IMG/VR virus record: IMGVR_UViG_3300025162_000016 | Location: 62,001 to 126,000 of that record | DNA: 64,000 nt | Reading direction: 5' to 3' (one strand) | Shown here: in pieces, positions 1-41,185 of the stretch | How the letters are laid out: each line of letters opens with the position of its first letter | Numbering within the stretch: position 1 is the stretch's first letter | Position numbers and translations under genes: made by a program | Notes under the pieces: model-generated | The model's input: only the letters and a program-made list of their open reading frames with translations | What the model was told of the DNA's origin: nothing | Database searches by the model: none

Positions 1-573
1 ATTAAGGAAACGTGTCTGGAGAAATATGGTAGTAATACTTTTTTTGCCTCGGATTATGCAAAGGAAAAAATTAAAAATACATGCATGGAACGATATGGAG
101 TGTCCTGTGTTTTATTGCTCCCCGAAATAAAAGAAAAATCGAAGCAAACCAACATTTTAAAGTATGGAGTTGCACACCCAATGCAAAATTCAATAATTAG
201 AAACAAAGTAATGTCGGCTATAAATAGAAAGTCGTATAAATTACAACAATATATGACCATTTTTAACGATAATATTGTATATCAATCTCTTCCGGAACTT
301 GCATTTATTAAGCTGTGCGAATCGAGGGGACTTCGAATTTTAAATGGACCGGTTTTACCGTATATTTTAGATGAAAAAAACAGAATGTATTATTCAGACT
401 TTTTAATTTCCGACACGAAAAGTCAGCGAATAGTAGAAATTAAAAGAAAGCATGAATGGTGGTTTTCCGGATTAAAATCGGGAGAAATTAAAGCAAAAAC
501 GAAATGCGCAATAAAATTCAGTAAAGAAAATGGATATTTGCCGTATAAAATCATTTTCGAAAATAAGATATGA
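1..573 (+). CDS. Free-standing endonuclease (5'-truncated), KYG repeats plus PD-(D/E)XK-type C-terminus
   Basis: Frame is open from base 1 (IKETCLEKYG...KNTCMERYG). C-terminal YSDFLI..IVEIK motif. Stop overlaps the terminase-fragment ATG (ATGA). Confidence 0.7.
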   Translation: MKETCLEKYGSNTFFASDYAKEKIKNTCMERYGVSCVLLLPEIKEKSKQTNILKYGVAHPMQNSIIRNKVMSAINRKSYKLQQYMTIFNDNIVYQSLPELAFIKLCESRGLRILNGPVLPYILDEKNRMYYSDFLISDTKSQRIVEIKRKHEWWFSGLKSGEIKAKTKCAIKFSKENGYLPYKIIFENKI

Positions 574-905
574 GCAATTTTAAAAAAATATCGGATTGGG
601 AAGTATTAACTCCAAATGGGTGGAGCGAGTTTAAAGGGGTTCAGGTTCGTCAAAAAGATTGTTATATTAAAATGGTATTTGATGATGGAACAATTTTAGA
701 ATGTTCGGAAAATCATAAAATTAAATTATTAAATGGTAAATTTGAATATGTTAAAAACATTGAACTTGGCACTTCGATTTTAGCATTAAATGGAAATAAA
801 ATTTTAGTATCTAAAGAGAAGATTGATGGGGAAATTGATTTATATGATTTGATAGAAGTGAAGAAAAACCGGGAATTTTATTCCAACGATATTTTATCAA
901 GTAAT
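570..905 (+). other. C-terminal fragment (112 aa) of an atypically split intein
   Basis: Starts at Met with no block A. Has VLTPNGW, block B CSENH, block F LYDLIEV and ends ILSSN|C. Resembles the AceL/GOS TerL split C-inteins (from memory). Confidence 0.82.
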
Positions 906-3900
906 TGTGCATTTATTGAAAAGGCGGAAGAGATTTGGGCGGCAGCCCAGCCCACACTATCTTGTTTAGATAAAAATACACTTATTTTATCCGACATGGG
1001 TTTAATTCGTTTGGAAACTTTTATTAATAGCTCAACTAAACTGGAATTTAATCCTGTAAATATAAAAACACATGATGGCGATAATATGGTTGATGTTTCT
1101 TCTTTTTATAAATCCGAAAAATCGGATTTATATGAAGTGGAATTTGAAAGTGGTGGCAAGATTGTTGGAACCGAGAATCATCCATTAATGACAAAAAGCG
1201 GGTGGAAAACTATTGGGGATTTAAACGAAAATGAGGATGCTGTTTTATGTAAATATTCTCAAAATGTTTTTGGTTCATCTATAGATTATACTAAATTCAA
1301 TCCCAATATTAGGAAGGATGCTATTGTTTATAAATTCTCCAATGAAGAAATTGCTTATTTGTGCGGGATTTGGACCGCTGAAGGTCACATTTGTAAAAAA
1401 ACAGTTGGGATTACTAACACAGATAAAGAAATAACCGATTGGTTAAAAGAAAAAGGATTTAAATGTTATGATGATAGACATTATTATTTAAGTTCGGGTT
1501 GGGTGGTTAATCTTTTAAAATGGATAGGATGTGAAGGAACGGCTCATACAAAACGAATTCCGGAACGAATTCTTGCGGCATCCCAAGAAGAACAAATTGC
1601 GTTTCTTCAAGGATTGTTTGATGGAGATGGTTGTTCATTAGGTTCCAAAGGAATTAAACTTACATCGGGTTCATATGAACTGCTTTCTAATGTGAGAGTT
1701 GTTCTATTGAATATGGGAATAAATTCTTATATACGAAATGCAGTATGGAAATCAACAAAATCCACGGTTATTAAAGATAAAACTAGAATTTTCAGTGGGT
1801 ATGAATTACATATTGGAGGTTTTGACGCCCATTCATTTTATTCTACAATTGGGTTTAGAATTAAAAGAAAACAACTTGGCTGGCAAAAGTTATCAAGAAA
1901 ATCTATTAAACGGATTTTTCCAGATAAGACAATCGTTAAAAACTTAATTCTTGAAAGTGGGATGTCGGTTAGAAAATTTTCAAAAAAACACAAGTGTTAT
2001 TATGATAGATATTTATGGTATGAAGGAAAGGGATTAAGCATTACATCTGTTGAAACTTTGTTAGATGTAATGAATGGATTAAATACTTCCGAAAATTATA
2101 AATTATTAAAACAGCAATATGACAAAGACATATCAGAATATTATGATAAAGTAGTTTCTATAAAATTCTTAAGAAATGATTATAGTTATGATTTAAGAGT
2201 TCCTTCAACCGAAAAGTTCCTTGCTAATGGTTATATAAACCATAATACTGGTGGTAAAGCTATTTTATTATCATGCGTAACAAAAGATACTATGGTGTTA
2301 TCTTCAAACGGAATCTCGGAGATGGAAGATTTTATTGATACTTCAAAAACAGGGGGGTATCAGAGAAATGATTATGGGATTCTAGGAGTTGATAAAATAA
2401 GATACAGTAATTTAATATATAACAATGGCATTCAAGATACTTTAAAAATTAAAACCAAATTTTCGGAATTAGAATGCACAAAAAATCATAAATTGTGGGC
2501 ATTTAAAAAAGACACAAATTCATTTGGATGGTATAAAAGTGAAGAATTGGGAATAGGAGATTTCCTTTCAATGCAGATTGGTATGAATATTTGGGGAGAT
2601 TATTGTAAATTAAACGGATTTAAACCATCCACTTCGAATAAAATTCATTCTCCTTTTTGTCCAACCGAAATAACTACAAACCTTGCATATTTGTTTGGTT
2701 TATATATTGCGGAAGGCAGTTCATACAAAGTAAAAAATAAATTGGGAGAAATGGTTGGAGGCTCAATAACTATAACATGTGGAGATGATATATCTTGGGT
2801 GTTTGAAACATTAGGATTATTTTATAACTGTTGGGATGGAATACATTATACTGTTTCGAACAAAAACCTACTGGAATTATTTGAGTATGTTGGGTTCGAT
2901 TTGTCTTTAAAAGCAATAAATAAAAAGATACCAAAAAATTTATTGAAAATGAGCCGTGAAAATATACGGTGGATGTTGAAAGGAATATTTGATGGCGATG
3001 GGGGTGGAACAAAGAATATCGTTCAATTAACGTCTACGTCCAAAGAATTAATAAAACAAATTAGGTTTATTTTAATGAATTTTGGAATATTATCCGGAGT
3101 GTGTAATCATTCCAAAGAAAAAATGAACTCTTATCGGGGAAAGATAAAGCATAATAATGGTGCATTGGTTTTAGAAATGAATGGAAGAAATGCTTTAAAA
3201 TTTTACAATGAGATAGGATTTAATCTAGAACGGAAACAAAAAAATAAATATAAATTATCTTTATCCAATTTAAAAAGAGCATGTAGTCACGATGTCGTTC
3301 CAAATACTTTATCTTTAATTAAATTATTAATCGATAAAACGTCACTTAATGGAAAAGAACTTTATGAAAAAACGGGATTATTTTTAAATGGATATTTGAA
3401 TAAAAAAACTCCTTATAAAACATCGCACCTTTCACGTCAAGACGTCCTGTTTTTGTATTCGCTTTTTGGGAATTTCCTTTCTGATGTAGAACAAACCAAT
3501 TGGAATAGAATATTAAAAGAGAATATCGTATGGTGTGAAATTAAAAATATAGAGTCTTCAAAAAACGAAACTTTCGATTTCTCACTACCACAAAACGATG
3601 AGGATTTTTGGTGTCATTCAGTTATTTATAATGGATTTATTGGTCACCAAACTCCGAATGGCGTGGGTAATTTCTTCCATAAAATGTGGGTTCAAGCTGA
3701 AGAAAATAGAAGTAAATTCTTCCCGATTAAACTTCCATGGCATTTGCATCCGGAACGAGATAAAAATTGGCGAGATGAACAGGATAGAGTTAGTGAAAAT
3801 TTAAAAAAGACCGCACAGGAATTGGATTGTGATTTTCTGAGTTCTGGAGCGACAGTTATTGATTTGGTTCTGTTGGCATGGTTTAAACAGACCTATATGA

Positions 3901-4706
3901 AAGATCCGGTGGAGAAACGTGGAATTGATCAAAATTATTGGATTTGGCAATATCCATCTTACACTACGGATACTAGCTATGCAGTAGCCGCAGATGTGGC
4001 AAGGGGCGACGGAGAAGATTTTTCATCATTTCATGTTTTAAATGTCAAAACAATGGAACAATGTGCTGAATATAAAGGACATATTTCAACTAAAGATTTT
4101 GGAAATATGTTGGTTTCGGTGGCAACCGATTATAATAATGCTTTACTTATTGTAGAACGAGAAGGTCCGGGATGGGCAACTTTACAGCAAATTATTGATA
4201 GATCATATCCCAATACCTTTTATGGATCTTCGGATTTAAAATATGTAGACGTAGAACAACAAATGACCAATAAATATTATACTGAAGACAAGAAATTAGT
4301 GCCGGGATTTGCGACTACCCTTCGAACTCGTCCGACCATTATTTCAAATCTCTGTCAATATTTTGTGGATAAATCCATTACAATATATTCCAAAAGAACT
4401 TATTCTGAATTAGAAGTATTTATTTGGGAAAATCATAAGCCGCAAGCGGCTAGAGGGTATAATGATGATTTAGTTATGGCGCTGGCGATTGGAATCTGGG
4501 TAAGGGATACTGCGCTTAGACTTCAAATGGAACGAACTAATCTTACTAGAGCAACATTAGATCAAATCGTAGTTAAAAAAACATCCGAAACCCCGATGTA
4601 CAAAATAGGCCCACAGCGAGCAAAAGATACATGGTCAATGCCAGTGGGACCAACTAAATCTCCATGGGGCTCAAAAAACGAGTCCCTGACGTGGCTTTTA
4701 GATTAA
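570..4706 (+). CDS. terL: Terminase large subunit, C-terminal part, with three inteins
   Basis: Exteins join as CAFIEKAEEIWAAAQPTLS-TGGKAILLS-TPNGVGNFFHKMW (post-Walker B and coupling motif). Nuclease domain has AADVARGDGED and YNDDLVMALAI. Confidence 0.92.
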   Translation: MSNFKKISDWEVLTPNGWSEFKGVQVRQKDCYIKMVFDDGTILECSENHKIKLLNGKFEYVKNIELGTSILALNGNKILVSKEKIDGEIDLYDLIEVKKNREFYSNDILSSNCAFIEKAEEIWAAAQPTLSCLDKNTLILSDMGLIRLETFINSSTKLEFNPVNIKTHDGDNMVDVSSFYKSEKSDLYEVEFESGGKIVGTENHPLMTKSGWKTIGDLNENEDAVLCKYSQNVFGSSIDYTKFNPNIRKDAIVYKFSNEEIAYLCGIWTAEGHICKKTVGITNTDKEITDWLKEKGFKCYDDRHYYLSSGWVVNLLKWIGCEGTAHTKRIPERILAASQEEQIAFLQGLFDGDGCSLGSKGIKLTSGSYELLSNVRVVLLNMGINSYIRNAVWKSTKSTVIKDKTRIFSGYELHIGGFDAHSFYSTIGFRIKRKQLGWQKLSRKSIKRIFPDKTIVKNLILESGMSVRKFSKKHKCYYDRYLWYEGKGLSITSVETLLDVMNGLNTSENYKLLKQQYDKDISEYYDKVVSIKFLRNDYSYDLRVPSTEKFLANGYINHNTGGKAILLSCVTKDTMVLSSNGISEMEDFIDTSKTGGYQRNDYGILGVDKIRYSNLIYNNGIQDTLKIKTKFSELECTKNHKLWAFKKDTNSFGWYKSEELGIGDFLSMQIGMNIWGDYCKLNGFKPSTSNKIHSPFCPTEITTNLAYLFGLYIAEGSSYKVKNKLGEMVGGSITITCGDDISWVFETLGLFYNCWDGIHYTVSNKNLLELFEYVGFDLSLKAINKKIPKNLLKMSRENIRWMLKGIFDGDGGGTKNIVQLTSTSKELIKQIRFILMNFGILSGVCNHSKEKMNSYRGKIKHNNGALVLEMNGRNALKFYNEIGFNLERKQKNKYKLSLSNLKRACSHDVVPNTLSLIKLLIDKTSLNGKELYEKTGLFLNGYLNKKTPYKTSHLSRQDVLFLYSLFGNFLSDVEQTNWNRILKENIVWCEIKNIESSKNETFDFSLPQNDEDFWCHSVIYNGFIGHQTPNGVGNFFHKMWVQAEENRSKFFPIKLPWHLHPERDKNWRDEQDRVSENLKKTAQELDCDFLSSGATVIDLVLLAWFKQTYMKDPVEKRGIDQNYWIWQYPSYTTDTSYAVAADVARGDGEDFSSFHVLNVKTMEQCAEYKGHISTKDFGNMLVSVATDYNNALLIVEREGPGWATLQQIIDRSYPNTFYGSSDLKYVDVEQQMTNKYYTEDKKLVPGFATTLRTRPTIISNLCQYFVDKSITIYSKRTYSELEVFIWENHKPQAARGYNDDLVMALAIGIWVRDTALRLQMERTNLTRATLDQIVVKKTSETPMYKIGPQRAKDTWSMPVGPTKSPWGSKNESLTWLLD
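963..2246 (+). other. Intein with LAGLIDADG endonuclease (428 aa)
   Basis: S|CLDKNT...YINHN|T. LAGLIDADG helices YLCGIWTAEG and FLQGLFDGDG. Confidence 0.93.
2274..3650 (+). other. Intein with LAGLIDADG endonuclease, Gln-terminated (459 aa)
   Basis: S|CVTKDT...GFIGHQ|TPNG. Helices YLFGLYIAEG and MLKGIFDGDG. Confidence 0.9.
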
Positions 4707-4756
4707 ATTCGCTATTTATACACAAGAAATATACACAGACAAAGAAATACAAATAT

Positions 4757-7723
4757 ATGGGAGAGCCAATTAAACAATTTGAAGATGATGTGGTAGATAT
4801 AAAGAAACAGTCTCTTTATGCTAGATTAAAACGACTATTTTCTACGGACGTAATTGTTCGTAATGTCGGCGGTAAGCAAATTAAGATTAAAGATACTGAT
4901 AACATCATGTATGCAACGGATCGCAATTCGTTGCGAGATAGATTTAATCGAATTCGAGCCACTTCGTATAATGCTTACTCAAGAGATTTTGCCCTGTCTT
5001 ATCAGGCCGCAAGAATGGATTTATTTCGAGATTATGATTGTGTCGGACCCGATACCATTATCCCATTGCCCGATGGTTCTCGTCCAACAATAAAAGAATT
5101 AACAGAAAAATATAAAGATAACCCACAGGAACGTTTCTTTGTATTTTCATATGACCACGGAGGCGACTCGATTAAATTAGGAAAAGCATATCACCCAAGA
5201 ATGAAAGGTCCACGTATTGGATTTAAAGTAACATTGGATAATGGTCAATATGTAATTGGAAGTATTAAACATCCGTTCCTAATGCGAAATGGTGAATATA
5301 AAACAATCTTTGATTTGAAAGTCGGTGAGTCAGTAATGCCATTTAATATAAATGATGATAGAATTTATAAATGTGTAAATGAGACCGAAATCGGGATGTT
5401 TTTCGTGATGTCAGCGGCATTAGAGGGAAATTATAATGTATCTCCTAAAATTGCATCCATTGAATGTATTGGAGAAATAGAAGTATATGATATGACCGTG
5501 GAAGAATATCATAATTTCGCTACTGATAGTTGTTTTGTATCAAACACAATGGATCAAGATCCCATCCTGGCATCATGTTTGGATATCGTGGCAGATGAGT
5601 GCCTTACTCTCAACGAATTAAAGGAAGTAATTGTTATTCATTCTAAAAACAACAATGTTAAGAAGATTCTTCATAATTTATATTATGATATTTTGAATAT
5701 TGAAGGTAACATGTGGTCATGGACTAGAAATTTATGTAAATACGGGGATTTCTTTTTAAAATTATATATTACTCCGGAATACGGTATTTACATGGTGGAG
5801 CCAATTTCTCCGTATAATGTTGAACGTATTGAAAATTGTGATCCCTACAACAAACGATATGTTAAGTTTCAACTTCGTCCTACGGATACTTCACAAGCCG
5901 AGATAGTAGAGAATTATGAAATGGCACATTTTCGATTATTATCGGATAGCAATTTTCTTCCATATGGAAAGAGTTATATAGAAGGCGCAAGGCGAGTGTG
6001 GAAACAGCTTTCGTTGCTCGAAGATGCCATGTTAATTCATCGTGTTATGCGGGCACCAGAACGCCGGATTTTTAAAATTGACGTGGGAAATATTCCTCCT
6101 AATGAGGTTGATTCTTATATGGAGAAATTAATATCCAAAGTACAGAAAGTTCCTTATATGGATGAACGAACCGGAGACTATAATCTTCGGTTTAATTTAC
6201 AGAATATGGTACAAGATTTTTATTTGCCGGTTCGGGGTGGAGACAGTGGAACCGCAATCGAATCTCTTCCCGGCATGGAATGGACAGGTATTGAGGATCT
6301 AGATTACGTTAAAAACAAAATGATGGCGGCTTTGAAAATTCCCAAGGCATTTTTAGGGTACGATGAGTCAATATCAGGGAAAAGTACTTTAGCTTGTATT
6401 GTTCCGGAAACAAAAATACCATTATTAAATGAGAAAATTAGTACTGTAGAAGAATTAATTAAAGATTATGATGCTGGTATTAAAAACTACGTGTATGCTT
6501 TTGATGAAGCAACTAAAAATATTGTTCCCGGCGAGATAGAATGGGCGGGATTTACTAGAATGAACACTGATATAGTTAGAGTTCACCTTGATAATAGTAA
6601 ATATATTGATTGCACACCGGATCATCGCTTTATGTTAAGAGATGGGACATGGGTAGAAGCGCAAACCTTAACCCAAGGACAATCATTGATGTCATTATGT
6701 TTATCAGAAAATATAGAAAACCATAAAGTAGTAAGAGTAGAGATATTGTCAGAAAAAAGAGATACTTGTGACATAACAATAAAAAAACATCATAATTTTG
6801 CAACATTGGCCGGAGTTATTATTCATAACTCGGAAGATGTTCGTTTTGCGAGAACGATACAACGACTTCAACGTATTTTAACTTCCGAGTTAAGTAAAAT
6901 TGCCATTGTTCATTTGTATGCACAAGGGTATAGGGATGAAGCATTAGTAGATTTTGAGCTTGAACTTACCAATCCAAGTACAATATTTGAGCGGGAGAAG
7001 GTTGAAATTTGGTCCGACAAAGTTGCAGTTGCAACTGATATGATGGAATCTAAACTATATTCTAAAGATTGGATTTATAAGAATATTTTCAATATGTCAG
7101 ACGACGATAAGACTGTAGTTGAAGATCAGATTATTGAAGATACTAAACAGAAATATCGCCTTACATCAATTGAAGAAGAAGGTAATGATCCGGCTAAACC
7201 TGCTCAAAAAATAGGGGCGGATGAACAAGATGGGGGAGGCGAAAGTGGAGGAGGTTCAGAGGGCGGATCGGATTTAGAAAGTTTAGGAGGCGGGCCTGAA
7301 GGCGGGGAGGGCGAAGGAGGAGGTGAACCTGGAGGCGGAGAGGGTGGAGGAGGTGAACTTGGCGGCGGGGCTCCTGGTGGGTTAAAAGAAGAAAAGGTTC
7401 AAGATCGAAGTGATAGAGATCAAAGCGATAGGGATCAAACTGGGTTAAAACATTCGGAGGATTATCCCTTTGGAGAGGATTATGATGGCAGATTAGGGAT
7501 GAAGTCCAAACCAGGTTCGGATCGTAGAATTCAATATAAACCACGGGATGTTCAATTCGAGGGGGTTCGTATAAAACCAACAATCGATAAAGGAGTCTTA
7601 AGCAATTTAAAGGCGTTTTTAGAAAAACCACTATTGCAAGAGCAAATCGAACTAAGGGAAGAAACCGAAAAAACCGGTAAAAGAAAAACTTTACTCGATG
7701 AAGGTAATATTCGAGATGAGTAA
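4757..7723 (+). CDS. Portal protein (T4 gp20-like) with two mini-inteins and a Gly/Glu-rich tail
   Basis: EDAMLIHRVMRAPERRIFKIDVGN, QDFYLPVRGG and ALKIPKAFLGY motifs. Start taken at ATG 4757 after a TATTTATA box. Confidence 0.93.
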   Translation: MGEPIKQFEDDVVDIKKQSLYARLKRLFSTDVIVRNVGGKQIKIKDTDNIMYATDRNSLRDRFNRIRATSYNAYSRDFALSYQAARMDLFRDYDCVGPDTIIPLPDGSRPTIKELTEKYKDNPQERFFVFSYDHGGDSIKLGKAYHPRMKGPRIGFKVTLDNGQYVIGSIKHPFLMRNGEYKTIFDLKVGESVMPFNINDDRIYKCVNETEIGMFFVMSAALEGNYNVSPKIASIECIGEIEVYDMTVEEYHNFATDSCFVSNTMDQDPILASCLDIVADECLTLNELKEVIVIHSKNNNVKKILHNLYYDILNIEGNMWSWTRNLCKYGDFFLKLYITPEYGIYMVEPISPYNVERIENCDPYNKRYVKFQLRPTDTSQAEIVENYEMAHFRLLSDSNFLPYGKSYIEGARRVWKQLSLLEDAMLIHRVMRAPERRIFKIDVGNIPPNEVDSYMEKLISKVQKVPYMDERTGDYNLRFNLQNMVQDFYLPVRGGDSGTAIESLPGMEWTGIEDLDYVKNKMMAALKIPKAFLGYDESISGKSTLACIVPETKIPLLNEKISTVEELIKDYDAGIKNYVYAFDEATKNIVPGEIEWAGFTRMNTDIVRVHLDNSKYIDCTPDHRFMLRDGTWVEAQTLTQGQSLMSLCLSENIENHKVVRVEILSEKRDTCDITIKKHHNFATLAGVIIHNSEDVRFARTIQRLQRILTSELSKIAIVHLYAQGYRDEALVDFELELTNPSTIFEREKVEIWSDKVAVATDMMESKLYSKDWIYKNIFNMSDDDKTVVEDQIIEDTKQKYRLTSIEEEGNDPAKPAQKIGADEQDGGGESGGGSEGGSDLESLGGGPEGGEGEGGGEPGGGEGGGGELGGGAPGGLKEEKVQDRSDRDQSDRDQTGLKHSEDYPFGEDYDGRLGMKSKPGSDRRIQYKPRDVQFEGVRIKPTIDKGVLSNLKAFLEKPLLQEQIELREETEKTGKRKTLLDEGNIRDE
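5039..5545 (+). other. Mini-intein in portal (169 aa)
   Basis: DYD|CVGPDT...VYDMTV..YHNF..CFVSN|TMDQD. Confidence 0.9.
6395..6829 (+). other. Mini-intein in portal (145 aa)
   Basis: TLA|CIVPET...CTPDH...VIIHN|SEDVRFART. Confidence 0.92.
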
Positions 7724-7792
7724 TCAAAGTTATAATAAATATACTCTTTTCAATGAGAAAGAGTATATTTATAATTAAGTCAAAATACTACT

Positions 7793-8698
7793 ATGCAGAT
7801 CCAGAAGAAAAAGCGGCATTCTAAGTTTAAAAATACTGGCATTCTCTTTGAACTATTGACACAGCAGTTAACCGCCGATATTGTCGGCGGTAAATCTGAG
7901 TCTAATGCAAAGAATTTGTTATTCAAGTATTTTAAAGAAAACACAGAATTAAGTCAAGAATGGAAGCTATATAGCACTCTTTTGACGCATAAACTCAAAA
8001 ATGAGGCACAGGCAGAACGAATGCTTAGTATTATCCTAGAAGCTCGAAAGAAACTTAGTAATAAAAAATTAAACCAAGAAAAATACGAATTAATAAAAGA
8101 AATAAAAGAAACCTATCCTTTGGATGACTTACTTAAAGCGCCGGTTCGAAATTATCGCATATTAGCATCCATTTATAAAATCTTCGAAGATAATATTTCC
8201 CGAAATATTAAATTCAATATCAATGAAGTATTTCAAGCTAAAACCTGTATAATAGAACATGTCATCGATAAACCAAAATCGATAATTAAAGAAACCGAAG
8301 ATGAACAACTTCTTAATACGTATAAACAACAATCTTCGGAAACTCGTCTTCTTGCATATGAATTTTTACTTGAAAAACTTAATGCAAAATACCATACTTT
8401 ATTGGACGATGACCAAAAAACAGTTTTACGTGAATATATTTATAATATAGCTAATACTAATTCTCTGGGAAATTTCATTAAAATCAAGGGGATAGAAGTA
8501 AAAACACAGTTGACTGAAATTGTTAAAAAGATTGAAGATAATGTTGCCCGAATTAAAGTAAATGAAGTAATTCATCAATTAAATAAAATAAGTCCGGAAT
8601 CTTCTAAAGTGCGTGATAGTCAGATTATGGTACTGCTTTTATCCTATGAACTTTTAAAAGAAGTTCGCAAACAATTGGGAATAACTTTACATGGATAA
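7793..8698 (+). CDS. Conserved helical head-assembly-region protein
   Basis: Long ORF between portal and protease, KRHSKFKNTGILFELL start, upstream TATTTATA box. Confidence 0.55.
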   Translation: MQIQKKKRHSKFKNTGILFELLTQQLTADIVGGKSESNAKNLLFKYFKENTELSQEWKLYSTLLTHKLKNEAQAERMLSIILEARKKLSNKKLNQEKYELIKEIKETYPLDDLLKAPVRNYRILASIYKIFEDNISRNIKFNINEVFQAKTCIIEHVIDKPKSIIKETEDEQLLNTYKQQSSETRLLAYEFLLEKLNAKYHTLLDDDQKTVLREYIYNIANTNSLGNFIKIKGIEVKTQLTEIVKKIEDNVARIKVNEVIHQLNKISPESSKVRDSQIMVLLLSYELLKEVRKQLGITLHG

Positions 8699-9029
8699 AA
8701 TAAAATTTCAAAGTTTAGTTCGGGAATGTATTAATGAATATTCTTCCCCAAAAGAGACAATTACTAAAACAGAGCTTAAAACGGTCATCAAAGAAACTAT
8801 TCGAACCATTTTAAATGAAATGGCAAATAAAGCGGAGGAAGAGGAAATTTTAGATGAAATGACTACAACGTCGGCGGTTGGTCCTATCAGTCTTCCCGGT
8901 AATGTCAGAGGAGGATGGGTATCGGGTAGAGGCGGCAGTCATCGAGGAGTAGCCGGATCTGCTGCTCTTGGATATGAACTTACCTCGATTGGTAAGAAAG
9001 ATATGAAACGTAAACAAGACCCGGTGTAA
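8691..9029 (+). CDS. Hypothetical, possible internal head protein
   Basis: Coupled ORF with several I/L-x-E motifs (CINE, ILNE, ILDE|MTTT). Confidence 0.45.
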   Translation: MDKIKFQSLVRECINEYSSPKETITKTELKTVIKETIRTILNEMANKAEEEEILDEMTTTSAVGPISLPGNVRGGWVSGRGGSHRGVAGSAALGYELTSIGKKDMKRKQDPV

Positions 9030-10597: not shown

Positions 10598-12292
10598 ATG
10601 AATGAATTAAAAGATTGGGTTATCGATAATCTTCTGGGTAAAACCAAAAAAATAATAGCTAAAAAAACGGATGAGAGTTGGTTTTTAGAAAACGGATTTT
10701 TGGAGAAGTATCATCAAATAATAAATACTACTTCATTTCTTTTTAATAATCCATCCATGTCACAACGGGTATGGCATATTATAAATGATAAACCAGCGGC
10801 GAATAAATGTAACAATCCAGAATGCAACAATTCCACTACTTTTTTATCATTTATCAGAGGATATTTGGGAACATGTTGTAATCGATGTGCTCAAAAAGTT
10901 CCAGAGACATGTGAAAAGATCAGAGCAACGAATATGAAGAAATATGGACACGCATATGGACTTCAAAGTTCGGAAGTAAAAGAAAAACGAGTTTCTACCT
11001 GTTTAGAAAAATACGGAGTGGATAATGTATCAAAATTAGACATTATAAGTGCGAGGAAAAAAGAAACTTGTCTAAAAAATTATGGGGTGTCTTGGATATT
11101 GCAGGATACTGACCGAATTCAGCATGGGGTTATGAAAAAATATGGAGTTGATAATGTACAAAAATCCGCTGAGGTTCAATTAAAAACGACGATAACACGT
11201 CGCAGTGCATTTTACGATTCATTGTTTTCCACGTTACGATTAAATGAGCGTGCGGTTCCCCTGTTTACGAAAGATGCATATATAAATGGAGGGTACTATG
11301 AAAAATATAAGTTTAAATGTAAAAAATGTTCCACTATATTTGAAGATTGTTTAGAAGATGGGGATATTCCACGATGCACCGACTGTTATAAGGGATCGTC
11401 TACGTTTGAAAAAGAAGTTACGGAATATATAAAATTAATATTGGGGACATCAGTAACAATAATCGAGAATGACAAAAAAACTCTTTCGGGAAATTATGAA
11501 CTGGATATTTTATTACCTTCTATAAACATTGCAATAGAATGCAATGGTCTTTTTTGGCATGGTGAGATGGGTGGAAATAAGTTAAGGAAATATCATCTTC
11601 AAAAGACTATTGAGTGCGAAAAGAAGAATATTCAACTTATTCATATATTTGAAGATGAATGGATAAATCATTCCGATATAGTTAAGATAAAACTTTCGCA
11701 TCTTTTGAAACAAACAAAATTAGAGACTATTTATGCAAGAAAATGTATAATAAAAGAAATTTCTTCTACTGAAAAAAATATATTTTTAAACACTTATCAT
11801 ATTCAAGGACAGGATACTAGTTCCATAAAAACCGGACTTTTTTATATGGATAAATTGGTAGGAGTTATGACATTTGGTCATAAAAGGATATTCATGAATC
11901 ATAAACAAGACAATAAATCTGAATTTGAATTAATTCGATATGCAAGCTCATCACATGTTATTGGAGGGGCCGGAAAACTCCTTAACTATTTTATAAAGAA
12001 ATATACTCCCACTAAAATAATATCATATGCGGATAGAAGATGGACATTTTATAAAAACAATTTGTATGAAAAATTGGGATTCGAAAAAGTGTCAGATGGA
12101 ACTCCGAATTATTGGTATTTCGGACGAGGAAAGGAATACAAAAGATATCATCGATTTGGGTTTAGAAAAAATGTTTTAGCGGCTCGATTGAAAATATTTG
12201 ATTCTAATTTATCCGAATGGGAGAATATGAAAAATAACGAATGGGATAGAATTTGGGATTGTGGCAATTTAAAATATGTAATGACTTTTTGA
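10598..12292 (+). CDS. Hef-like homing endonuclease with KYG repeats
   Basis: Cys-pair N-terminus, TCLxKYG repeats, ELDI..IECNGLFWH, HIFEDEW, ISYADRRW, RIWDCG. Confidence 0.75.
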   Translation: MNELKDWVIDNLLGKTKKIIAKKTDESWFLENGFLEKYHQIINTTSFLFNNPSMSQRVWHIINDKPAANKCNNPECNNSTTFLSFIRGYLGTCCNRCAQKVPETCEKIRATNMKKYGHAYGLQSSEVKEKRVSTCLEKYGVDNVSKLDIISARKKETCLKNYGVSWILQDTDRIQHGVMKKYGVDNVQKSAEVQLKTTITRRSAFYDSLFSTLRLNERAVPLFTKDAYINGGYYEKYKFKCKKCSTIFEDCLEDGDIPRCTDCYKGSSTFEKEVTEYIKLILGTSVTIIENDKKTLSGNYELDILLPSINIAIECNGLFWHGEMGGNKLRKYHLQKTIECEKKNIQLIHIFEDEWINHSDIVKIKLSHLLKQTKLETIYARKCIIKEISSTEKNIFLNTYHIQGQDTSSIKTGLFYMDKLVGVMTFGHKRIFMNHKQDNKSEFELIRYASSSHVIGGAGKLLNYFIKKYTPTKIISYADRRWTFYKNNLYEKLGFEKVSDGTPNYWYFGRGKEYKRYHRFGFRKNVLAARLKIFDSNLSEWENMKNNEWDRIWDCGNLKYVMTF

Positions 12293-25931: not shown

Positions 25932-27605
25932 CTATCCACCATGTTTATTTTTCGAAGATGGAACCCATTCATGTTTTAGATTCCCACAATCCCAGATTCG
26001 ATCATATCCATTTAATTGCATATTCTGCCATTCAGTTAAGTTACTGTCGAAATTGGGAAAAATATCTTTTAAATTGTGTTTTCTAAAATTATATCGGTAT
26101 ATTCTTTTATTATAATTCTTTCCCAGATACCAATAATTAGGTCCGGTGTTTTTATTTATAGAAGTAAATCCTAATGATTTATAAATATTTTTATCAGTAT
26201 TACTCCATCTTACATCCGAATAAGATAAAATATATTCGGGATTATAGTTTTTTATAAAATAGGACAATAACTTACTGCCAATTCCAATAACTCGTTTATT
26301 TAAATGCGTACAAAACCTATACATTTCCCATTGGTTCTTTTTAGCGATATTTCCTAAAGCTATTCTCAATGCCCCAAATGTCATCACCGCCACAAGTTCG
26401 TTATTGTAATATGCTCCCACCCTCAATGATGCCATATCTTTTCCCTGAATATGATTGAGATCTAAAAACTCATTACATACATCCGCATTTAATAATCGAA
26501 TATCACATTTTCTGGCATATATTTTATCAGAAAGATTTTTATTAAATATATGAATTAATTTATTTTTGACTATTTCCTGTTTGTATATCCATTCGTCTTC
26601 AAATATATGAATTAAACGTATCTGCTTATCTTTACACGCCGTTGTTTTATTGAGGTGATAGTTTTTATATTTTTTCCCTCCGATTTCTGAATGCCAAAAT
26701 AATCCGTCATATTCAATTGCAATATTTAGAGATGATATAAAAATATCTAATTCTTTACCGCTCAATATTTTTCGATCGTTTGATATAATAGTTTCATTGG
26801 GTAATATTGATTTTATAAATTCTAATATTTTAGTTTCGGTTTGGGTTTTACTTATAGGATTGCAAATAAAACATCTTGGTATATTACCATTCAATAAAGT
26901 ATCTTCAAATTTGGATTCACAGAATTTACATTGAAACCAGTATTTAGTATCATATGATACATTCCCCCGATATTCCAATTCTGAAAATAATGGTATTATA
27001 TTTGTAAATTTACTCCCATTTACTATAAAATTATAATGATTTATCCGGCGTGCCTGTAATTGTTTTTCTTTTATTTCTAAATTTTGAGATATATAAGGCA
27101 CTCCATAAGTTTTAATGTTAGTCGCCTTTGTTTTCTTTTTATTCTCTTCCAACATCGCTACATTATTAACTCCATATTTATCCAAATTTGTTTTTTTAAC
27201 TCGCTCTAATATTTCGGAACTTTTTAATGGAATAGTAACTTTATATTTTTTATATAATGATTCTATTTGCCGGTTTCTTAATTCACTGTTTTGTTGAGGA
27301 TTCCTTACCCCATATCGCTCTAAACATGTATTAATCTGTTTATCTCTTATTACTTTGTTCTGACTGGGGGATATTACTCCATATTTTTTTAAACACGTTT
27401 TTTTAGCTTTCTCCGATATACACTCAAGTTTAGCTACATTATCAACTCCATATTTTTTTAGATTAAAATCCCGCCGACGAAGATTTGTTTTTTCAATATT
27501 CTCAGGCCGAGAACGATATTCCTCAAAACATCCCGTAGAACAATGCTGCTTATTCCGATGACGAGTATTAAATTCTTTATTACAATTTTTACATTTTTTT
27601 ATCAT
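25932..27605 (-). CDS. Hef-like homing endonuclease with KYG repeats
   Basis: CKNC/CSTGC N-terminus, KYG repeats, ELDI..EYDGLFWH, HIFEDEW, RIWDCG. Confidence 0.75.
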   Translation of the reverse strand: MIKKCKNCNKEFNTRHRNKQHCSTGCFEEYRSRPENIEKTNLRRRDFNLKKYGVDNVAKLECISEKAKKTCLKKYGVISPSQNKVIRDKQINTCLERYGVRNPQQNSELRNRQIESLYKKYKVTIPLKSSEILERVKKTNLDKYGVNNVAMLEENKKKTKATNIKTYGVPYISQNLEIKEKQLQARRINHYNFIVNGSKFTNIIPLFSELEYRGNVSYDTKYWFQCKFCESKFEDTLLNGNIPRCFICNPISKTQTETKILEFIKSILPNETIISNDRKILSGKELDIFISSLNIAIEYDGLFWHSEIGGKKYKNYHLNKTTACKDKQIRLIHIFEDEWIYKQEIVKNKLIHIFNKNLSDKIYARKCDIRLLNADVCNEFLDLNHIQGKDMASLRVGAYYNNELVAVMTFGALRIALGNIAKKNQWEMYRFCTHLNKRVIGIGSKLLSYFIKNYNPEYILSYSDVRWSNTDKNIYKSLGFTSINKNTGPNYWYLGKNYNKRIYRYNFRKHNLKDIFPNFDSNLTEWQNMQLNGYDRIWDCGNLKHEWVPSSKNKHGG

Positions 27606-31111: not shown

Positions 31112-32980
31112 TTGAACTATAGACAATTATCTGATATAGTTATAACCATGATAATAAATCAAAACGAAATAATAATAACGGAAGACGAGTCAAAAAAATG
31201 TAAATTATGTAACAATATATTTAGATCGGGACGAGTAATGATATGGCATGTTCGAAAAGAACATAAATTAAATTTTAAAAGTTATATTTTACAAACATAT
31301 TACAATAATGAAACTCCTAAATGTTTAAAAACAGGAAAAGAACTAACGTTTAAACCACATCAATTAGGACCATGGTTTAGTAATTATTCTAAAAACAATT
31401 TTCCGAGAAAAAATCATTCTGAAGAATCTAAAGGAAAAATACGAATCGGATGCGAGAGAACTTCAATGAATAAATTCGGGGTTAAAAATGTGTTTCAAAC
31501 AGAATGGTGCAAGGAAAAAATAAAAAATACTATTAAAGAAAAATATGGAGTTAATAATCCGATGCAAATTGATGAGTTTAAACAAAAAATGATTAATTCA
31601 TTTTTTGAAACGATAAAAAATCGTCCAATTAAAACTTATATAAAAACTAATATAGATCCTAATCGTCCATCAAAATTAGAATTTGATTTTTCAAACAAAC
31701 TGAAATGTAATAACATTGACTTTATATCTCCTTTTGTATACAATGGAAAACGTTTTGATTTTTATATTCCAATTTTAAATACAATTATTGAACTCGATGG
31801 TGAAGCATATCATAAAGATCAGTTAGAATCATTAACTCTTAAAACAATAAACGGAAGTAGGAATGATTACAATAAAAATAATATAATAGATAAATCATTT
31901 TATGATTTTTATCGAATACGATATCATATTGATCGGTTTATTTTTAACGATGTTGCATCTTTAAATAAAGCAATCAACGAAAATAAATATTTTCCGAATT
32001 ATGGAATTAAATATAAACAAAAAATTGTTGAAAGGAAATATTTCAAACGGTATATCAGTTCCAAGGGAAAAGAAAACCTTTTAAAATATTCTTATTTATT
32101 CTTAAAATTCATTAGGGCATTTCAGCCGGAGTTACCGTATCCGGATTTGGAGGAAGAATTGGGTAATATATTACAAAAGGTAGCTAATTATGATATAGCG
32201 AGGGTATATGATAAGGGCACCGGGAATTTTTCGAGTAACATATCAATGGTAGGGAACAATTATTTAAAGCATTATTTTCATTCGTATTGGGGAGCAAAGT
32301 TTTCGGGTAATTTGAGTCCAAAGGAGGCATGGTTAGATAATAAGATAATGAAAGAGGTTATAGAATATCGGGTTGGGTGTAATAACAGCAATGAGGTATA
32401 TGATTTTAGTTTACATCAAGTGGTGAGGGGATTATCAGCGAGGAGGATTACGGTATCTTTTTTTCCTTCTTTATTAGCCGCCAGCATTTATTCGGTTATA
32501 TTAGGAGATAAAGAATATCCGGTGGTATTAGATCCTTGTTGTGGGTTTGGAGGAAGGTTACTAGGATTTAAGAGTAAATATCCTAATGGGACATATATTG
32601 GATGCGAGCCAAATATTGAGACATATAATGAGTTACAGGATTTAGTTAAACGGGCGAATTGGAAGAATGTAACTATATATAATTGTAAATTTGAAGAATT
32701 TGAAGATGGAACTGACAACTATGATTTGATATTTACTTCTATTCCATATTATGATATTGAGATATATAGTAACAATACTGGGTATGGATCATTTGATGGA
32801 TGGAGGGATACATTTATTAAATCGATAGAGAAATACCGGGGAAAGAATTGTTATATTAATGTAGCGACGGAAGTGGCGAATCGGTTACAATGGAATGACC
32901 GTCCGTATAAAATTTTAAAGAATACTTCACATTTTTGTAAAAGCCGGAATCAAAGAATGGAACCTATTGTTAGGTTATGA
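31112..32980 (+). CDS. C2H2 finger / KYG repeat / Vsr-DUF559-like nuclease / amino-methyltransferase fusion (start may be ATG 31148)
   Basis: CKLC..HVRKEH; RFDFYI..IELDGEAYH; DPCCGFGGRLLG, GCEPN, FTSIPYY. Confidence 0.7.
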   Translation: MNYRQLSDIVITMIINQNEIIITEDESKKCKLCNNIFRSGRVMIWHVRKEHKLNFKSYILQTYYNNETPKCLKTGKELTFKPHQLGPWFSNYSKNNFPRKNHSEESKGKIRIGCERTSMNKFGVKNVFQTEWCKEKIKNTIKEKYGVNNPMQIDEFKQKMINSFFETIKNRPIKTYIKTNIDPNRPSKLEFDFSNKLKCNNIDFISPFVYNGKRFDFYIPILNTIIELDGEAYHKDQLESLTLKTINGSRNDYNKNNIIDKSFYDFYRIRYHIDRFIFNDVASLNKAINENKYFPNYGIKYKQKIVERKYFKRYISSKGKENLLKYSYLFLKFIRAFQPELPYPDLEEELGNILQKVANYDIARVYDKGTGNFSSNISMVGNNYLKHYFHSYWGAKFSGNLSPKEAWLDNKIMKEVIEYRVGCNNSNEVYDFSLHQVVRGLSARRITVSFFPSLLAASIYSVILGDKEYPVVLDPCCGFGGRLLGFKSKYPNGTYIGCEPNIETYNELQDLVKRANWKNVTIYNCKFEEFEDGTDNYDLIFTSIPYYDIEIYSNNTGYGSFDGWRDTFIKSIEKYRGKNCYINVATEVANRLQWNDRPYKILKNTSHFCKSRNQRMEPIVRL

Positions 32981-38510: not shown

Positions 38511-39686
38511 ATGGATAATATACTTTCAGATCAAGATAGCATCAGATTTACCGGCAGTGGTTCTAATCCTGCTGGTAACACTCCTTATGGTTTTTACGAC
38601 AACGACGCAATTTTCCTTACGGAATGTTATAGAGGAATGTTATGGGCATCTAGAAAATTGGGTTATCCGATAACCGACATTGAAATGATTGACATTAATT
38701 TCTACGCCTGTTATGAAGAGGCAGTCAATGAATACGGTAAAGAAGTAAATCAATTTAATATTGTTAACAACATGCTCGTGTTTCAAGGTCAAAATCTTGA
38801 AACTTTAGGTAGTGTAAATGGCAGGAACGTTCAAGGAACCGGTCTTAGTCAAATGATTATGTTGGCGAAGGATTATGGTTCGGAAACCGGTGCTGGTGGT
38901 AGAGTAGATTGGAAACGAGGTTATATCCAAGTTAATGCGGGTATACAAGACTACGATCTTCAGGCATTATGGGGAGATGCTAAAGAAAGCTGTAACAAAA
39001 TGGAAATAAAACGTATATTCCATGACCGACCCCCTGCCTCGGCTCGAATTTATGACCCATTTTCGATGACAGGAATGAGTTATAGTAATGTTTTGACTGA
39101 GCTAGGATTTGGGGCATATTCTCCGGCTGTTCAATTTTTAATGACCCCAATTTTCGAAGATTTGCTTCGGATGCAATCGATTGAATTTAACGATATGGTA
39201 CGTAAATCGGCATATAGTTTTGAGATTGTAAATAATAAAGTAAGGGTATTTCCCATTCCGACATATAGCTATAAGATGTGGTTTGAATATATTCTTGAAA
39301 AAGATAGATTAGAGAGTTTATTATCGGCATCTGGGTCGAATGTAGTATCTGATTACTCGAATGTTCCGTATGTTATGCCTATATATTCCAAGATTAATGA
39401 ACCTGGGAGACAATGGATACGCAATTATTTTCTGGCCTGTTGTAAAGAGACTTTAGGACAAATTCGTTCAAAGTATCAGACTATTCCTATTCCGAATGGA
39501 GAAACTACTCTTAACGGTCCGGAGTTGATTCAGGCGGCACAAACTGAGAAAGAATCACTATTAGAGAATTTGAGATTAATGCTTGAGCAATCGGGGAAAT
39601 TTTATCAATTGGAAAAACAATCTGAATTAACCGAACAAATTAATAATACATTAAAGGGAGTTCCTTTGTATATTTACGTGGGATGA
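38511..39686 (+). CDS. Neck/head-completion protein (gp13-like)
   Basis: KLGYPITDIE, CKETLGQIRSKY..IPIP...LNG, VPLYIYVG. Lies after the head genes. Confidence 0.7.
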   Translation: MDNILSDQDSIRFTGSGSNPAGNTPYGFYDNDAIFLTECYRGMLWASRKLGYPITDIEMIDINFYACYEEAVNEYGKEVNQFNIVNNMLVFQGQNLETLGSVNGRNVQGTGLSQMIMLAKDYGSETGAGGRVDWKRGYIQVNAGIQDYDLQALWGDAKESCNKMEIKRIFHDRPPASARIYDPFSMTGMSYSNVLTELGFGAYSPAVQFLMTPIFEDLLRMQSIEFNDMVRKSAYSFEIVNNKVRVFPIPTYSYKMWFEYILEKDRLESLLSASGSNVVSDYSNVPYVMPIYSKINEPGRQWIRNYFLACCKETLGQIRSKYQTIPIPNGETTLNGPELIQAAQTEKESLLENLRLMLEQSGKFYQLEKQSELTEQINNTLKGVPLYIYVG

Positions 39687-41185
39687 AAGTTTAACTGATA
39701 TTTTGTACACCCGCAATCCCAGATTCTATCCCATCCGTTATTTTTCATATTTTCCCATTCAGAAAGAGCGGGGTTAAAATTTGGGAGTCTATTGGACAGA
39801 GAGTTCTTTTTAAATCCGTATCGATGATATCTTTTAGAGTGATCTTTAGTATAGAAATAATTGGGATTAGTTTCCAATATTTTTGAAAATCCCATTTTGG
39901 AATATATTTCCCCGGTTCCCCATCTTCTATCGGAATAGGAGATAATTTTTTCAGGGGAATAGTTTTTGATAAAGTAATTTAATAATTTTCCAAATCCACC
40001 TATCACGGAGCGATTTATTTTCGAACAGAATCTGTACATTTCCCAATGATTATTTACGGGAACTGATCCAAGAGATTTTCTTAATTTTCCAAATGTCATT
40101 ACAGATATCAACTCATTTTTATAATACAAACCGAGTTTTATTAAGGATGCATCTGATCCTTGCAGGTGATTTTCATTGAGAAATAAATTAGAGTCTACAC
40201 CGGGCACTATTTTAGTTTCACATTTTCTGGCATATATTTTTACGGGAGATGTTTTGAGTATGGATTGCAATCTACTTTTTACAATTTGTTCTTTGAATCT
40301 CCATTCATCTTCAAATATATGGATAAGCCGGATTCCTTTGGTTTGACATTGCAATGTTTTATCGAGATGATATTTCTTTGAAATTCCTCCAGTTAATTGA
40401 CTATGATAGTATAATCCATCAAATTCTATTCCTAATTTATGAGAAGGAATGTAAATATCTATTTCTTTACCGGACAAAATGGTTCTATCATTTTCCTTTA
40501 CATCTATTACATTTAAAGTGGTTTTAATATAATCTATAATATCTTTTTGGCATTTTGAAATATAGTTTGGAAAACAAATTGGACATCGAGGTATATGTCC
40601 ATCTTGGAGATGATTATGAAACAAACTTTTACATAATTTACATTCGAATTTATATGTTAATTCGACCCCCAAGTATTCTTCTTTTGAAAATAATGGGGTG
40701 ACATTTTTATATCTTACATCGGTAAAAAATCTCTCATAATTCTCTTGTAGAATATTTGACCGAATTTCTTTAGATTGAATTGGATAATCGGTTCCATATT
40801 TTTTACGATTGGTTTCTTTTATTTGTTGTTTGCATTTATCCAATTTTAGATTACAATCTTCCCCATAATGTTTTAAGCAAGTTTCTTTCTTTTTCTCTTT
40901 TATGAGAGGAGATATTGATGGATTTTTTACTCCATAAGTTTTTAAACAACTGGCTTCTTTTTTCTGTTTAACATTGGTGGAATTATTGGAACATTTGCGA
41001 GAGCAATACGATCTAAAACCGGAGAATATATCATTTAAAACGGTAATATTTCCGCATTGGATGCAGTTTCCGACATTGATTATTTCCGGATGAATCCATT
41101 TATACAATTTCTCTTTAAAGGAATTTCCGGAAAAGTTAGTTAGAATGGACGAATAACATTCGGGATAATCTCGGCGAATAATCAT
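39674..41185 (-). CDS. Hef-like homing endonuclease with KYG repeats
   Basis: KYG repeats, EIDI..EFDGLYYH, HIFEDEW, RIWDCG. Confidence 0.75.
   Translation of the reverse strand: MIIRRDYPECYSSILTNFSGNSFKEKLYKWIHPEIINVGNCIQCGNITVLNDIFSGFRSYCSRKCSNNSTNVKQKKEASCLKTYGVKNPSISPLIKEKKKETCLKHYGEDCNLKLDKCKQQIKETNRKKYGTDYPIQSKEIRSNILQENYERFFTDVRYKNVTPLFSKEEYLGVELTYKFECKLCKSLFHNHLQDGHIPRCPICFPNYISKCQKDIIDYIKTTLNVIDVKENDRTILSGKEIDIYIPSHKLGIEFDGLYYHSQLTGGISKKYHLDKTLQCQTKGIRLIHIFEDEWRFKEQIVKSRLQSILKTSPVKIYARKCETKIVPGVDSNLFLNENHLQGSDASLIKLGLYYKNELISVMTFGKLRKSLGSVPVNNHWEMYRFCSKINRSVIGGFGKLLNYFIKNYSPEKIISYSDRRWGTGEIYSKMGFSKILETNPNYFYTKDHSKRYHRYGFKKNSLSNRLPNFNPALSEWENMKNNGWDRIWDCGCTKYQLNFHPT

Follow-up and report, generated by a model that had tools for sequence, protein, structure and literature searches.

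How does a phage make its packaging ATPase when the only gene for it is broken into separate reading frames? The question is raised by the gene for the large terminase subunit (terL) in IMG/VR record IMGVR_UViG_3300025162_000016. The stretch of this record that was analysed, 64,000 nucleotides in length (the window), corresponds to bases 62001-126000 of one contig of 368,758 bp (36% G+C), the genome of a freshwater phage of roughly 369 kb whose host is probably a freshwater member of the Bacteroidota. From the window's letters, an original prediction proposed that terL is interrupted here by an atypically split intein with an endonuclease gene inside the split. The locus touches the left edge of the window, and upstream DNA was included in the region examined here (L001, G000:C1:58001-68000).

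The terL gene is split over three overlapping open reading frames (ORFs) of the same strand (L001:2566-3159, 3137-4573, and 4570-8706, all +). Their order is N-extein with N-intein (IntN), free-standing endonuclease gene, and C-intein (IntC) with C-extein. We consider it probable that this fractured gene, the sole terL of the phage, is used to make TerL through predicted trans-splicing plus the cis-splicing of two further inteins, and that the endonuclease gene is a mobile agent residing in the split.

The terL gene is fractured within an intein

The first ORF lies upstream of the window (G000:C1:60566-61159 = L001:2566-3159, +) and encodes a 197-aa protein that matches Terminase_6N in Pfam and phrog_5989 ('terminase large subunit') in PHROGs. 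Its 164-aa N-extein ends at the Walker B motif (...SAALSLLVLDE) and is extended by a tail of 33 aa, CCEKSTVVYIRNKKTGETKPVKIGELYESNIYV, before a TAA stop. This tail is the N-intein (G000:C1:61058-61156 = L001:3058-3156, +, upstream of the window); it opens with Cys-Cys-Glu-Lys-Ser-Thr-Val-Val, the first residue being Cys1. An upstream terL part ending in DE-Cys, with about 25 to 35 further residues and a stop, had been predicted from the window, and it was found.

The third ORF (window 570-4706, +, 1378 codons) starts with the C-intein. As originally proposed, this is a 112-aa fragment (window 570-905, +) that ends in SSN/C (the slash marks the splice junction) with Ser in place of His as its penultimate residue. 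These 112 residues include VLTPNGW, CSENH, and LYDL, end in ILSSN, and are followed by CAFIEKAEEIW. The block labels first attached to them stand in part: CSENH is block B (TxxH, with Ser for Thr), but VLTPNGW does not belong to block B and forms the strand that directly follows the split point. In an alignment with the C-intein of the engineered Cat consensus (CatC), the catalytic positions of IntC are Ser46-x-x-His49 in block B, Asp93 in block F, and the terminal Ser111-Asn112, followed by Cys+1. The class-1 catalytic set is complete across the two fragments (Cys1, block B Ser/His, block F Asp, terminal Asn, and Cys+1).

The assignment of IntC was examined with a query of 112 aa plus 15 extein residues (127 residues, window 570-950). 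Among solved structures, the query matches 6dsl_B best ('Consensus engineered intein CatC'; phmmer against PDB, E=4.6e-13, residues 9-114), at an identity of roughly 35% as judged by eye from the alignment; the Cat consensus is also the answer to the proposed comparison with known TerL split inteins, being the nearest solved sequence. The next PDB matches are gp41-1 intein entries (6qaz_A, E=9e-6; 6riz_A, E=6e-5), and an exhaustive protein search returned 1051 library representatives at E<=1e-3. Because of the E value against CatC and these 1051 representatives, the assignment is far beyond chance. For the N-intein, a 43-aa query against PDB (phmmer) gave chance pilin matches only and did not find CatN, and an N-intein query from a second TerL site (ECD/C) found nothing in PDB; peptides this short are below the reach of phmmer.

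The two intein fragments are predicted to associate

Complex prediction was carried out for IntC with 15 extein residues and IntN with 10 extein residues, in three runs and three controls. The IntN-IntC ipSAE was 0.78 in three runs, versus 0.01 for the best of the three controls, on a tool whose pairing mark is reached by 51 of 78 solved complexes and by 2 of 108 mismatched pairs. Agreement between the runs extends to 88% or more of the contacts, and the pLDDT of the partner is 77 or higher. The predicted interface consists of LDE-Cys1-Cys-Glu-Lys on the N chain and residues 43-50 (block B), 89-94 (block F), and 110-113 (Ser-Ser-Asn-Cys+1) on the C chain. The models support an association of the fragments in what would be an active-site-like geometry.

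Conceptual reconstruction of the large terminase subunit

The C-part ORF carries two more inteins in addition to IntC (all features on the + strand). The first TerL extein segment, CAFIEKAEEIWAAAQPTLS, begins with Cys+1 (window 906-962) and is delimited by the empty-site allele P0006 and by the ungapped alignment with the TerL of Flavobacterium phage vB_FspM_immuto. It is followed by a contiguous 428-aa LAGLIDADG intein (window 963-2246; C...HN/T), identified by the Pfam matches Intein_splicing and LAGLIDADG_3 and by the extein alignment. A short extein segment, TGGKAILLS (window 2247-2273, placed by the extein alignment), separates this from a third intein, again contiguous and of the LAGLIDADG type (459 aa, window 2274-3650; Pfam and extein alignment), which ends in GHQ/T. 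The remaining 351 aa, comprising the rest of the ATPase domain and the nuclease domain, and the stop (window 3651-4706) were placed by the end-to-end immuto alignment; this C-terminal extein is ~48% identical to the vB_FspM_immuto TerL.

When IntN, IntC, and the 428-aa and 459-aa inteins were removed by script, the conceptual spliced TerL had 543 aa. It aligns with the intein-free 524-aa TerL of vB_FspM_immuto at 50% identity over 537 columns, and all three junctions are free of gaps (window, LLVLDECAFIEKAEEIWAAAQPTLSTGGKAILLSTPNG; immuto, LLLIDEAAFIDNIEETFTAAQQTLATGGQCMALSTPNG). The split intein sits directly after the DE of Walker B, and its excision would restore this conserved motif. The predicted rebuilding of DE/CAFI is borne out by the conceptual product: the junction becomes ...LLVLDECAFIEKAEEIW... 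and aligns without gaps to ...LLLIDEAAFIDNIEE... of the intein-free TerL. The metagenomic fragment P0006, with near-identical exteins, has empty sites for all three inteins and reads DE-AAFIEKAEEIWAAAQPTLSTGGKAILLSTPNG at the first of them.

The third intein has Gln (His-Gln/Thr) in place of Asn as its C-terminal residue. The same ending is present in the related locus L003.

The endonuclease gene in the split

The gene between the two halves (G000:C1:61137-62573 = L001:3137-4573, +) encodes a putative homing endonuclease of 478 aa and starts 863 nt before the window. The last 190 codons of this gene, plus its stop, occupy window positions 1-573 (+). The endonuclease ORF overlaps the last 23 nt of the N-part ORF in a different frame and the start of the C-part ORF by ATGA, in which its TGA stop overlaps the next ATG (window 570-573). 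The original description of a KYG-repeat PD-(D/E)XK endonuclease ORF just upstream of IntC agrees with these features, as KYG repeats and a D...ExK motif are both present.

The protein matches DUF7487 in Pfam (E=2.3e-58), with a weak Tn7_TnsA-like_N match, and two PHROGs annotated 'homing endonuclease' (phrog_3339 and phrog_12131). Its N-terminus is zinc-finger-like, and it contains 12 KYG repeats of about 23 aa each (spacing 19-23 residues). The PD-(D/E)XK nuclease domain occupies residues 345-478 (window 169-570, +) and was delimited by alignment, AlphaFold model, and fold and profile matches. Four residues of this domain (D421, E434, K436, and K454) are invariant in an alignment of 14 homologues (A1) and include a classical D...ExK motif. 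The AlphaFold model of the domain (pLDDT 86.5) has the TnsA catalytic domain as its top fold match (TM 0.63 by query, prob 1.00), followed by Hjc, Bax1, and R2 nucleases, and the domain profile matches T7 endonuclease I (E=8e-4). A restriction-endonuclease-like fold with a conserved D...(D/E)xK motif places the domain in the PD-(D/E)XK superfamily.

A search of PDB with the whole endonuclease sequence gave nothing significant. Neither the PDB sequence and profile searches nor the 50 fold matches listed include any Vsr or I-Bth0305I entry, and therefore the endonuclease is unlike both types found by Dassa et al. in fractured genes.

DUF7487 is not confined to this gene. In Atlas clusters from phages and giant viruses, it is fused to TnsA-like, DUF559/Vsr, HNH, Mom, acetyltransferase, and methylase domains, and about nine further ORFs with a KYG/DUF7487 array are present in the same genome. 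Four of these are in the window (10598-12292, +; 25932-27605, -; 31148-32980, +; and 39674-41185, -), and others are at genome positions 140702-142519, 149151-150656, 151730-152839, 152842-154842, and 218471-219376. Most of the further ORFs end in another conserved C-terminal domain (...NG(W/Y)DRIWDCG...) and not in the TnsA-like nuclease. The DUF7487 ORFs form a large paralogous family of free-standing endonuclease-like genes within one phage genome.

The ATG of the endonuclease gene is supplied by TATGAA, two conserved codons for Tyr-Glu close to where the N-intein ends, and an identical 23-nt out-of-frame overlap is found in two diverged loci (L001:3137-3159, genome 61137-61159; and L003:6578-6600).

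Distribution of the split intein and related loci

In the top 120 of the 459 clusters (E<=1e-3) returned by a protein search with the N-part, 90 have DE followed by a tail of 30 to 44 aa and a stop, the tail being exactly 33 aa in 71; this search admits proteins 0.55 to 1.75 times the length of the query and enriches split forms. The first residue of the 90 tails is Cys1 in 89 and Ser1 in the other one, and their consensus is roughly C-x4-T-x-I-x-I-R-N-K-x-T-G-E-I-K...L-Y/F...E-Y-K. We rejected the view, drawn from the 90 of 120 N-parts, that the split form is the dominant state of the gene: the count misleads because the length filter leaves out full-length TerLs, and of the closest 80 TerL relatives in IMG/VR, 77 have no intein at the Walker B site and one is split.

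On the C-terminal side, the junction could be placed in 144 of the best 150 of the 1051 IntC representatives, with IntC being N-terminal in 91 and internal in 53. All 144 placed junctions read Asn or Gln then Cys, Ser, or Thr, as the script's rule has it, with Cys at +1 in 137. At the penultimate position, 112 of the 148 scored representatives have His and 24 have Ser, the latter including split loci such as L008; Ser therefore is a recurrent natural variant and no sign of decay. Many clusters keep both a 33-aa tail closed by a stop and an IntC that opens with Met.

Four related loci (L003, L002, L004, and L008) are split in the same way as in the window genome, and upstream synteny is common to all four. 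Their slots between the intein halves differ. The first (L003, NCBI GCA_005795865.1) has an N-part, a 502-aa DUF7487 endonuclease, and a C-part, with the 23-nt and ATGA overlaps of the window locus. L002 has only a 124-aa remnant of the nuclease domain between the halves (L002:6649-7023), and L004 keeps the split across a spacer of only about 50 nt in which the endonuclease is absent (L004:6610-6659). The slot of L008 (L008:2602-3654) holds a different endonuclease of 350 aa with NUMOD3-like motifs, and the intein there also ends in SSN/C. The inserted ORF overlaps the start of IntC by ATGA in four of four insert-bearing loci. Diverged relatives with the same layout have N-parts 65% to 75% identical to that of the window genome. 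In two contiguous versions (P0082 and P0051), a short loop connects the intein halves, and in P0082 this position is free of any endonuclease domain.

Together, the related loci probably represent gain, decay, replacement, and loss of endonuclease genes in a stably split intein. Homing, in which an endonuclease-free allele would be cleaved and the gene copied in, matches these syntenic split loci where the gene is present, a remnant, absent, or replaced.

The intein family is found at several positions in TerL, namely, after the Walker B DE, at ECD/C(D/E)F, at a TPNG motif, and just before Walker B. The second of these sites (AAQECD/C(D/E)F) lies in the nuclease domain, and L004 has a contiguous intein of this family there (L004:7300-7800). 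In several of P0033, P0039, P0045, P0048, P0062, and P0075, the inteins at this site are again atypically split after about 30 aa, and therefore N-proximal splitting is recurrent in this intein lineage.

Just upstream of the terL block, L003 carries a resolvase gene and a Cas12f1-like_TNB (TnpB-type) gene (L003:3256-5150), which are absent from this position in the window genome.

Proposed mechanism and alternative explanations

Expression of the locus would begin with an mRNA on which the three ORFs are probably co-transcribed, and on which translation of the C-part is probably coupled to that of the endonuclease ORF by the ATGA overlap. The short N-intein would then dock into the nearly complete, open HINT domain of the C-intein. 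In the class-1 reaction expected from the catalytic residues, Cys1 would form a thioester, the N-extein would be transferred to Cys+1, Asn112 would cyclise, and an S-to-N shift would complete the peptide bond, giving ...LLVLDE-CAFIEK... as the product. The 543-aa TerL would result once the other two inteins had also been removed by cis-splicing. The endonuclease would be the mobile agent occupying the split and was probably responsible at one time for creating or spreading it. Its likely targets are alleles of co-infecting relatives that have no endonuclease gene, and repair after the cut would copy the gene in. Conservation of the tail, Cys1, and the junction residues across the family implies function.

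Several points weigh against this scheme. The penultimate His, a helper of Asn cyclisation in many inteins, is Ser, and the last step could be slowed or impaired. Part of the complex score may be due to solved split inteins that the model has memorised. The case for co-transcription and translational coupling comes from the ORF overlaps only, and the counts from a promoter and terminator scan equal the shuffled expectation. The activity and target site of the endonuclease are deduced from its family and motifs.

The Ser for His replacement and the complex prediction, which supports binding but not chemistry, are also what would be expected if the intein halves no longer spliced and served as non-covalent docking domains only, like the tails of the Aeh1 NrdA that is fragmented by mobE. 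There is a precedent for such rescue of an endonuclease-fragmented phage gene without splicing (Crona et al. 2010, PMC3045599). We regard this main rival as unlikely here. The nucleophiles, block B His, block F Asp, and terminal Asn are all intact and conserved in the family, and the penultimate Ser recurs naturally, as noted above. An unspliced product would also leave a 145-aa insert following the Walker B strand beside the catalytic Glu, which is hard to square with ATPase function. The same gene could be viewed as a decaying pseudogene in a phage whose DNA is packaged by another protein, and the load of three inteins and an endonuclease in one gene does resemble heavy parasitism. This is very improbable, given that no second terL was detected in the 368,758-bp genome (tblastn, E<=1e-3), that no extein segment is damaged and the full length shares 50% identity with a functional phage TerL, and that the layout persists in the diverged relatives described above.

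The break could be apparent only, through an assembly or sequencing artefact or through repair in the RNA or during translation (by a group I intron, a frameshift, or bypass), so that the intein is really contiguous with an internal endonuclease. Endonuclease ORFs do occur in group I introns and as in-frame intein domains, and the N-part and endonuclease ORFs do overlap in different frames. Against an artefact, contigs assembled separately from three runs of two studies span L001:2400-5400 with 0 substitutions or indels and reproduce the stops and the endonuclease ORF without differences. These runs are one 2017 freshwater metagenome and two 2020 lake-water metagenomes, some of which may be the source of the analysed DNA; a fourth run covers most of the same interval. 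Rfam finds no intron or other RNA family in L001:2400-5200, which argues against repair at the RNA level. Many clusters conserve the stop after the 33-aa tail and the initiating Met of IntC, L004 keeps both the stop and the restart across its short endonuclease-free spacer, and the contiguous relative P0082 joins the halves by a loop and not through an endonuclease domain. Of all the explanations, this one is the least credible to us, and the two developments that the original prediction had named as fatal to itself, an upstream terL part lacking a block-A tail or an intein contiguous through the endonuclease ORF, were not what the upstream sequence and the assemblies revealed.

Trans-splicing of a fractured terL remains the preferred explanation, and it may have a further aspect, which we hold as a doubtful possibility in either of two forms. 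The pair may belong to a distinct orthogonal sub-lineage, marked by the Walker-B site, the penultimate Ser, and an 'IRNKxTGE' N-fragment, with useful kinetics. Or the endonuclease may have an uncharacterised homing-endonuclease architecture, in which the twelve 23-aa KYG repeats (DUF7487) would read DNA modularly and the array would be swapped among nuclease, methylase, and Mom-type domains, with about ten paralogues in this genome.

Relation to known split inteins and fractured genes

A fractured terminase from Lake Gatun, broken at an unusual point and with a 122-aa C-part, was reported by Dassa et al. 2009 (PMC2677866), and therefore the arrangement seen here is of a known kind. In both cases a phage TerL (gp17-like) from a freshwater metagenome is split by a free-standing endonuclease gene, which in the window genome is on the same strand, as expected for the fractured-gene arrangement of those authors that had been invoked. 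The break is N-proximal in both, and the C-part (122 aa there and 112 aa here) keeps all N-terminal motifs except the first.

The predicted short-N/long-C layout is equally clear, with 33/112 aa here compared with 25/104 aa in AceL-TerL and 37/115 aa in GOS-TerL, the latter having Ser1 and Cys+1 (review PMC11766414). According to this review, AceL-TerL was described by Thiel et al. 2014, GOS-TerL, from GOS data, was characterised by Bachmann & Mootz 2015, and the Cat-TerL consensus is from Stevens et al. 2017 (PDB 6DSL). Cat is the consensus of GOS-TerL and AceL-TerL, both experimentally trans-splicing atypical inteins (PMC11766414). The intein described here is like AceL-TerL and Cat in its atypical split, with a short N-intein (25-30 aa in those) and a long C-intein (104 aa), in Cys1 and Cys+1, and in its class-1 residues. 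It is clearly diverged from CatC, with small insertions in IntC and an SSN ending rather than SHN; the intein at the ECD/C site of L004 matches CatC slightly better (E=1.6e-15) than the window IntC does. From GOS-TerL it differs in having Cys1 and not Ser1, a 33-aa N-intein, and the penultimate Ser. We take GOS-TerL itself to come from the Lake Gatun fractured terminase locus.

Canonical split inteins such as gp41-1 have the same fractured-gene logic and detectable HINT homology. They differ in being split at the insertion point of the endonuclease domain, into about 88 to 105 aa (N) and 33 to 54 aa (C), whereas the split here comes after about 33 aa. The Vsr-like/EDxHD (I-Bth0305I family) and GIY-YIG endonucleases are comparable as free-standing genes between intein halves and in their restriction-endonuclease-like catalytic fold. 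In contrast to them, the present endonuclease combines a DUF7487 repeat array as its DNA-binding part with a D...ExK domain resembling TnsA, T7 endonuclease I, and Hjc. The mismatch with the endonuclease types of Dassa et al. is a difference of the passenger gene, not of the arrangement. The Aeh1 NrdA/mobE system (PMC3045599) likewise involves an essential phage gene that a mobile endonuclease gene has broken up and whose function is restored at the protein level, but through non-covalent tails, where the present locus has complete intein halves with all catalytic residues.

The original prediction saw here a new natural trans-splicing pair. A complete pair is indeed present, but its kind is already known from descriptions going back to 2009 and has been put to use since 2014, and the split form occurs in many metagenomic protein clusters; many uncharacterised members exist. 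For protein labelling and semisynthesis, atypically split inteins that have a short N-fragment are valued tools, and few natural ones (AceL-TerL and GOS-TerL) and one consensus (Cat) have been characterised (PMC11766414). The locus adds a natural pair that is complete and comes with its two native exteins and a known genomic context, and metagenomes hold many more. The syntenic series of loci with full endonuclease, remnant, different endonuclease, none, and contiguous intein documents the life cycle of a fractured gene, and the only packaging ATPase of this jumbo phage would need one trans-splicing and two cis-splicing events. The interest of the locus is moderate in practical and low in conceptual terms, and current concepts are unchanged.

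Further observations in the terminase region

A megablast search of the locus against a phage collection, which possibly lacks this genome's own record, gave no match. Downstream of terL, a T4-like portal gene (Pfam Portal_T4, window about 4757-7723) contains two mini-inteins of 169 and 145 aa (window 5039-5545, C...VSN/T; and 6395-6829, C...IHN/S). Two or three portal inteins are present in related loci. The portal protein also has a long Gly/Glu-rich low-complexity stretch close to its C-terminus.

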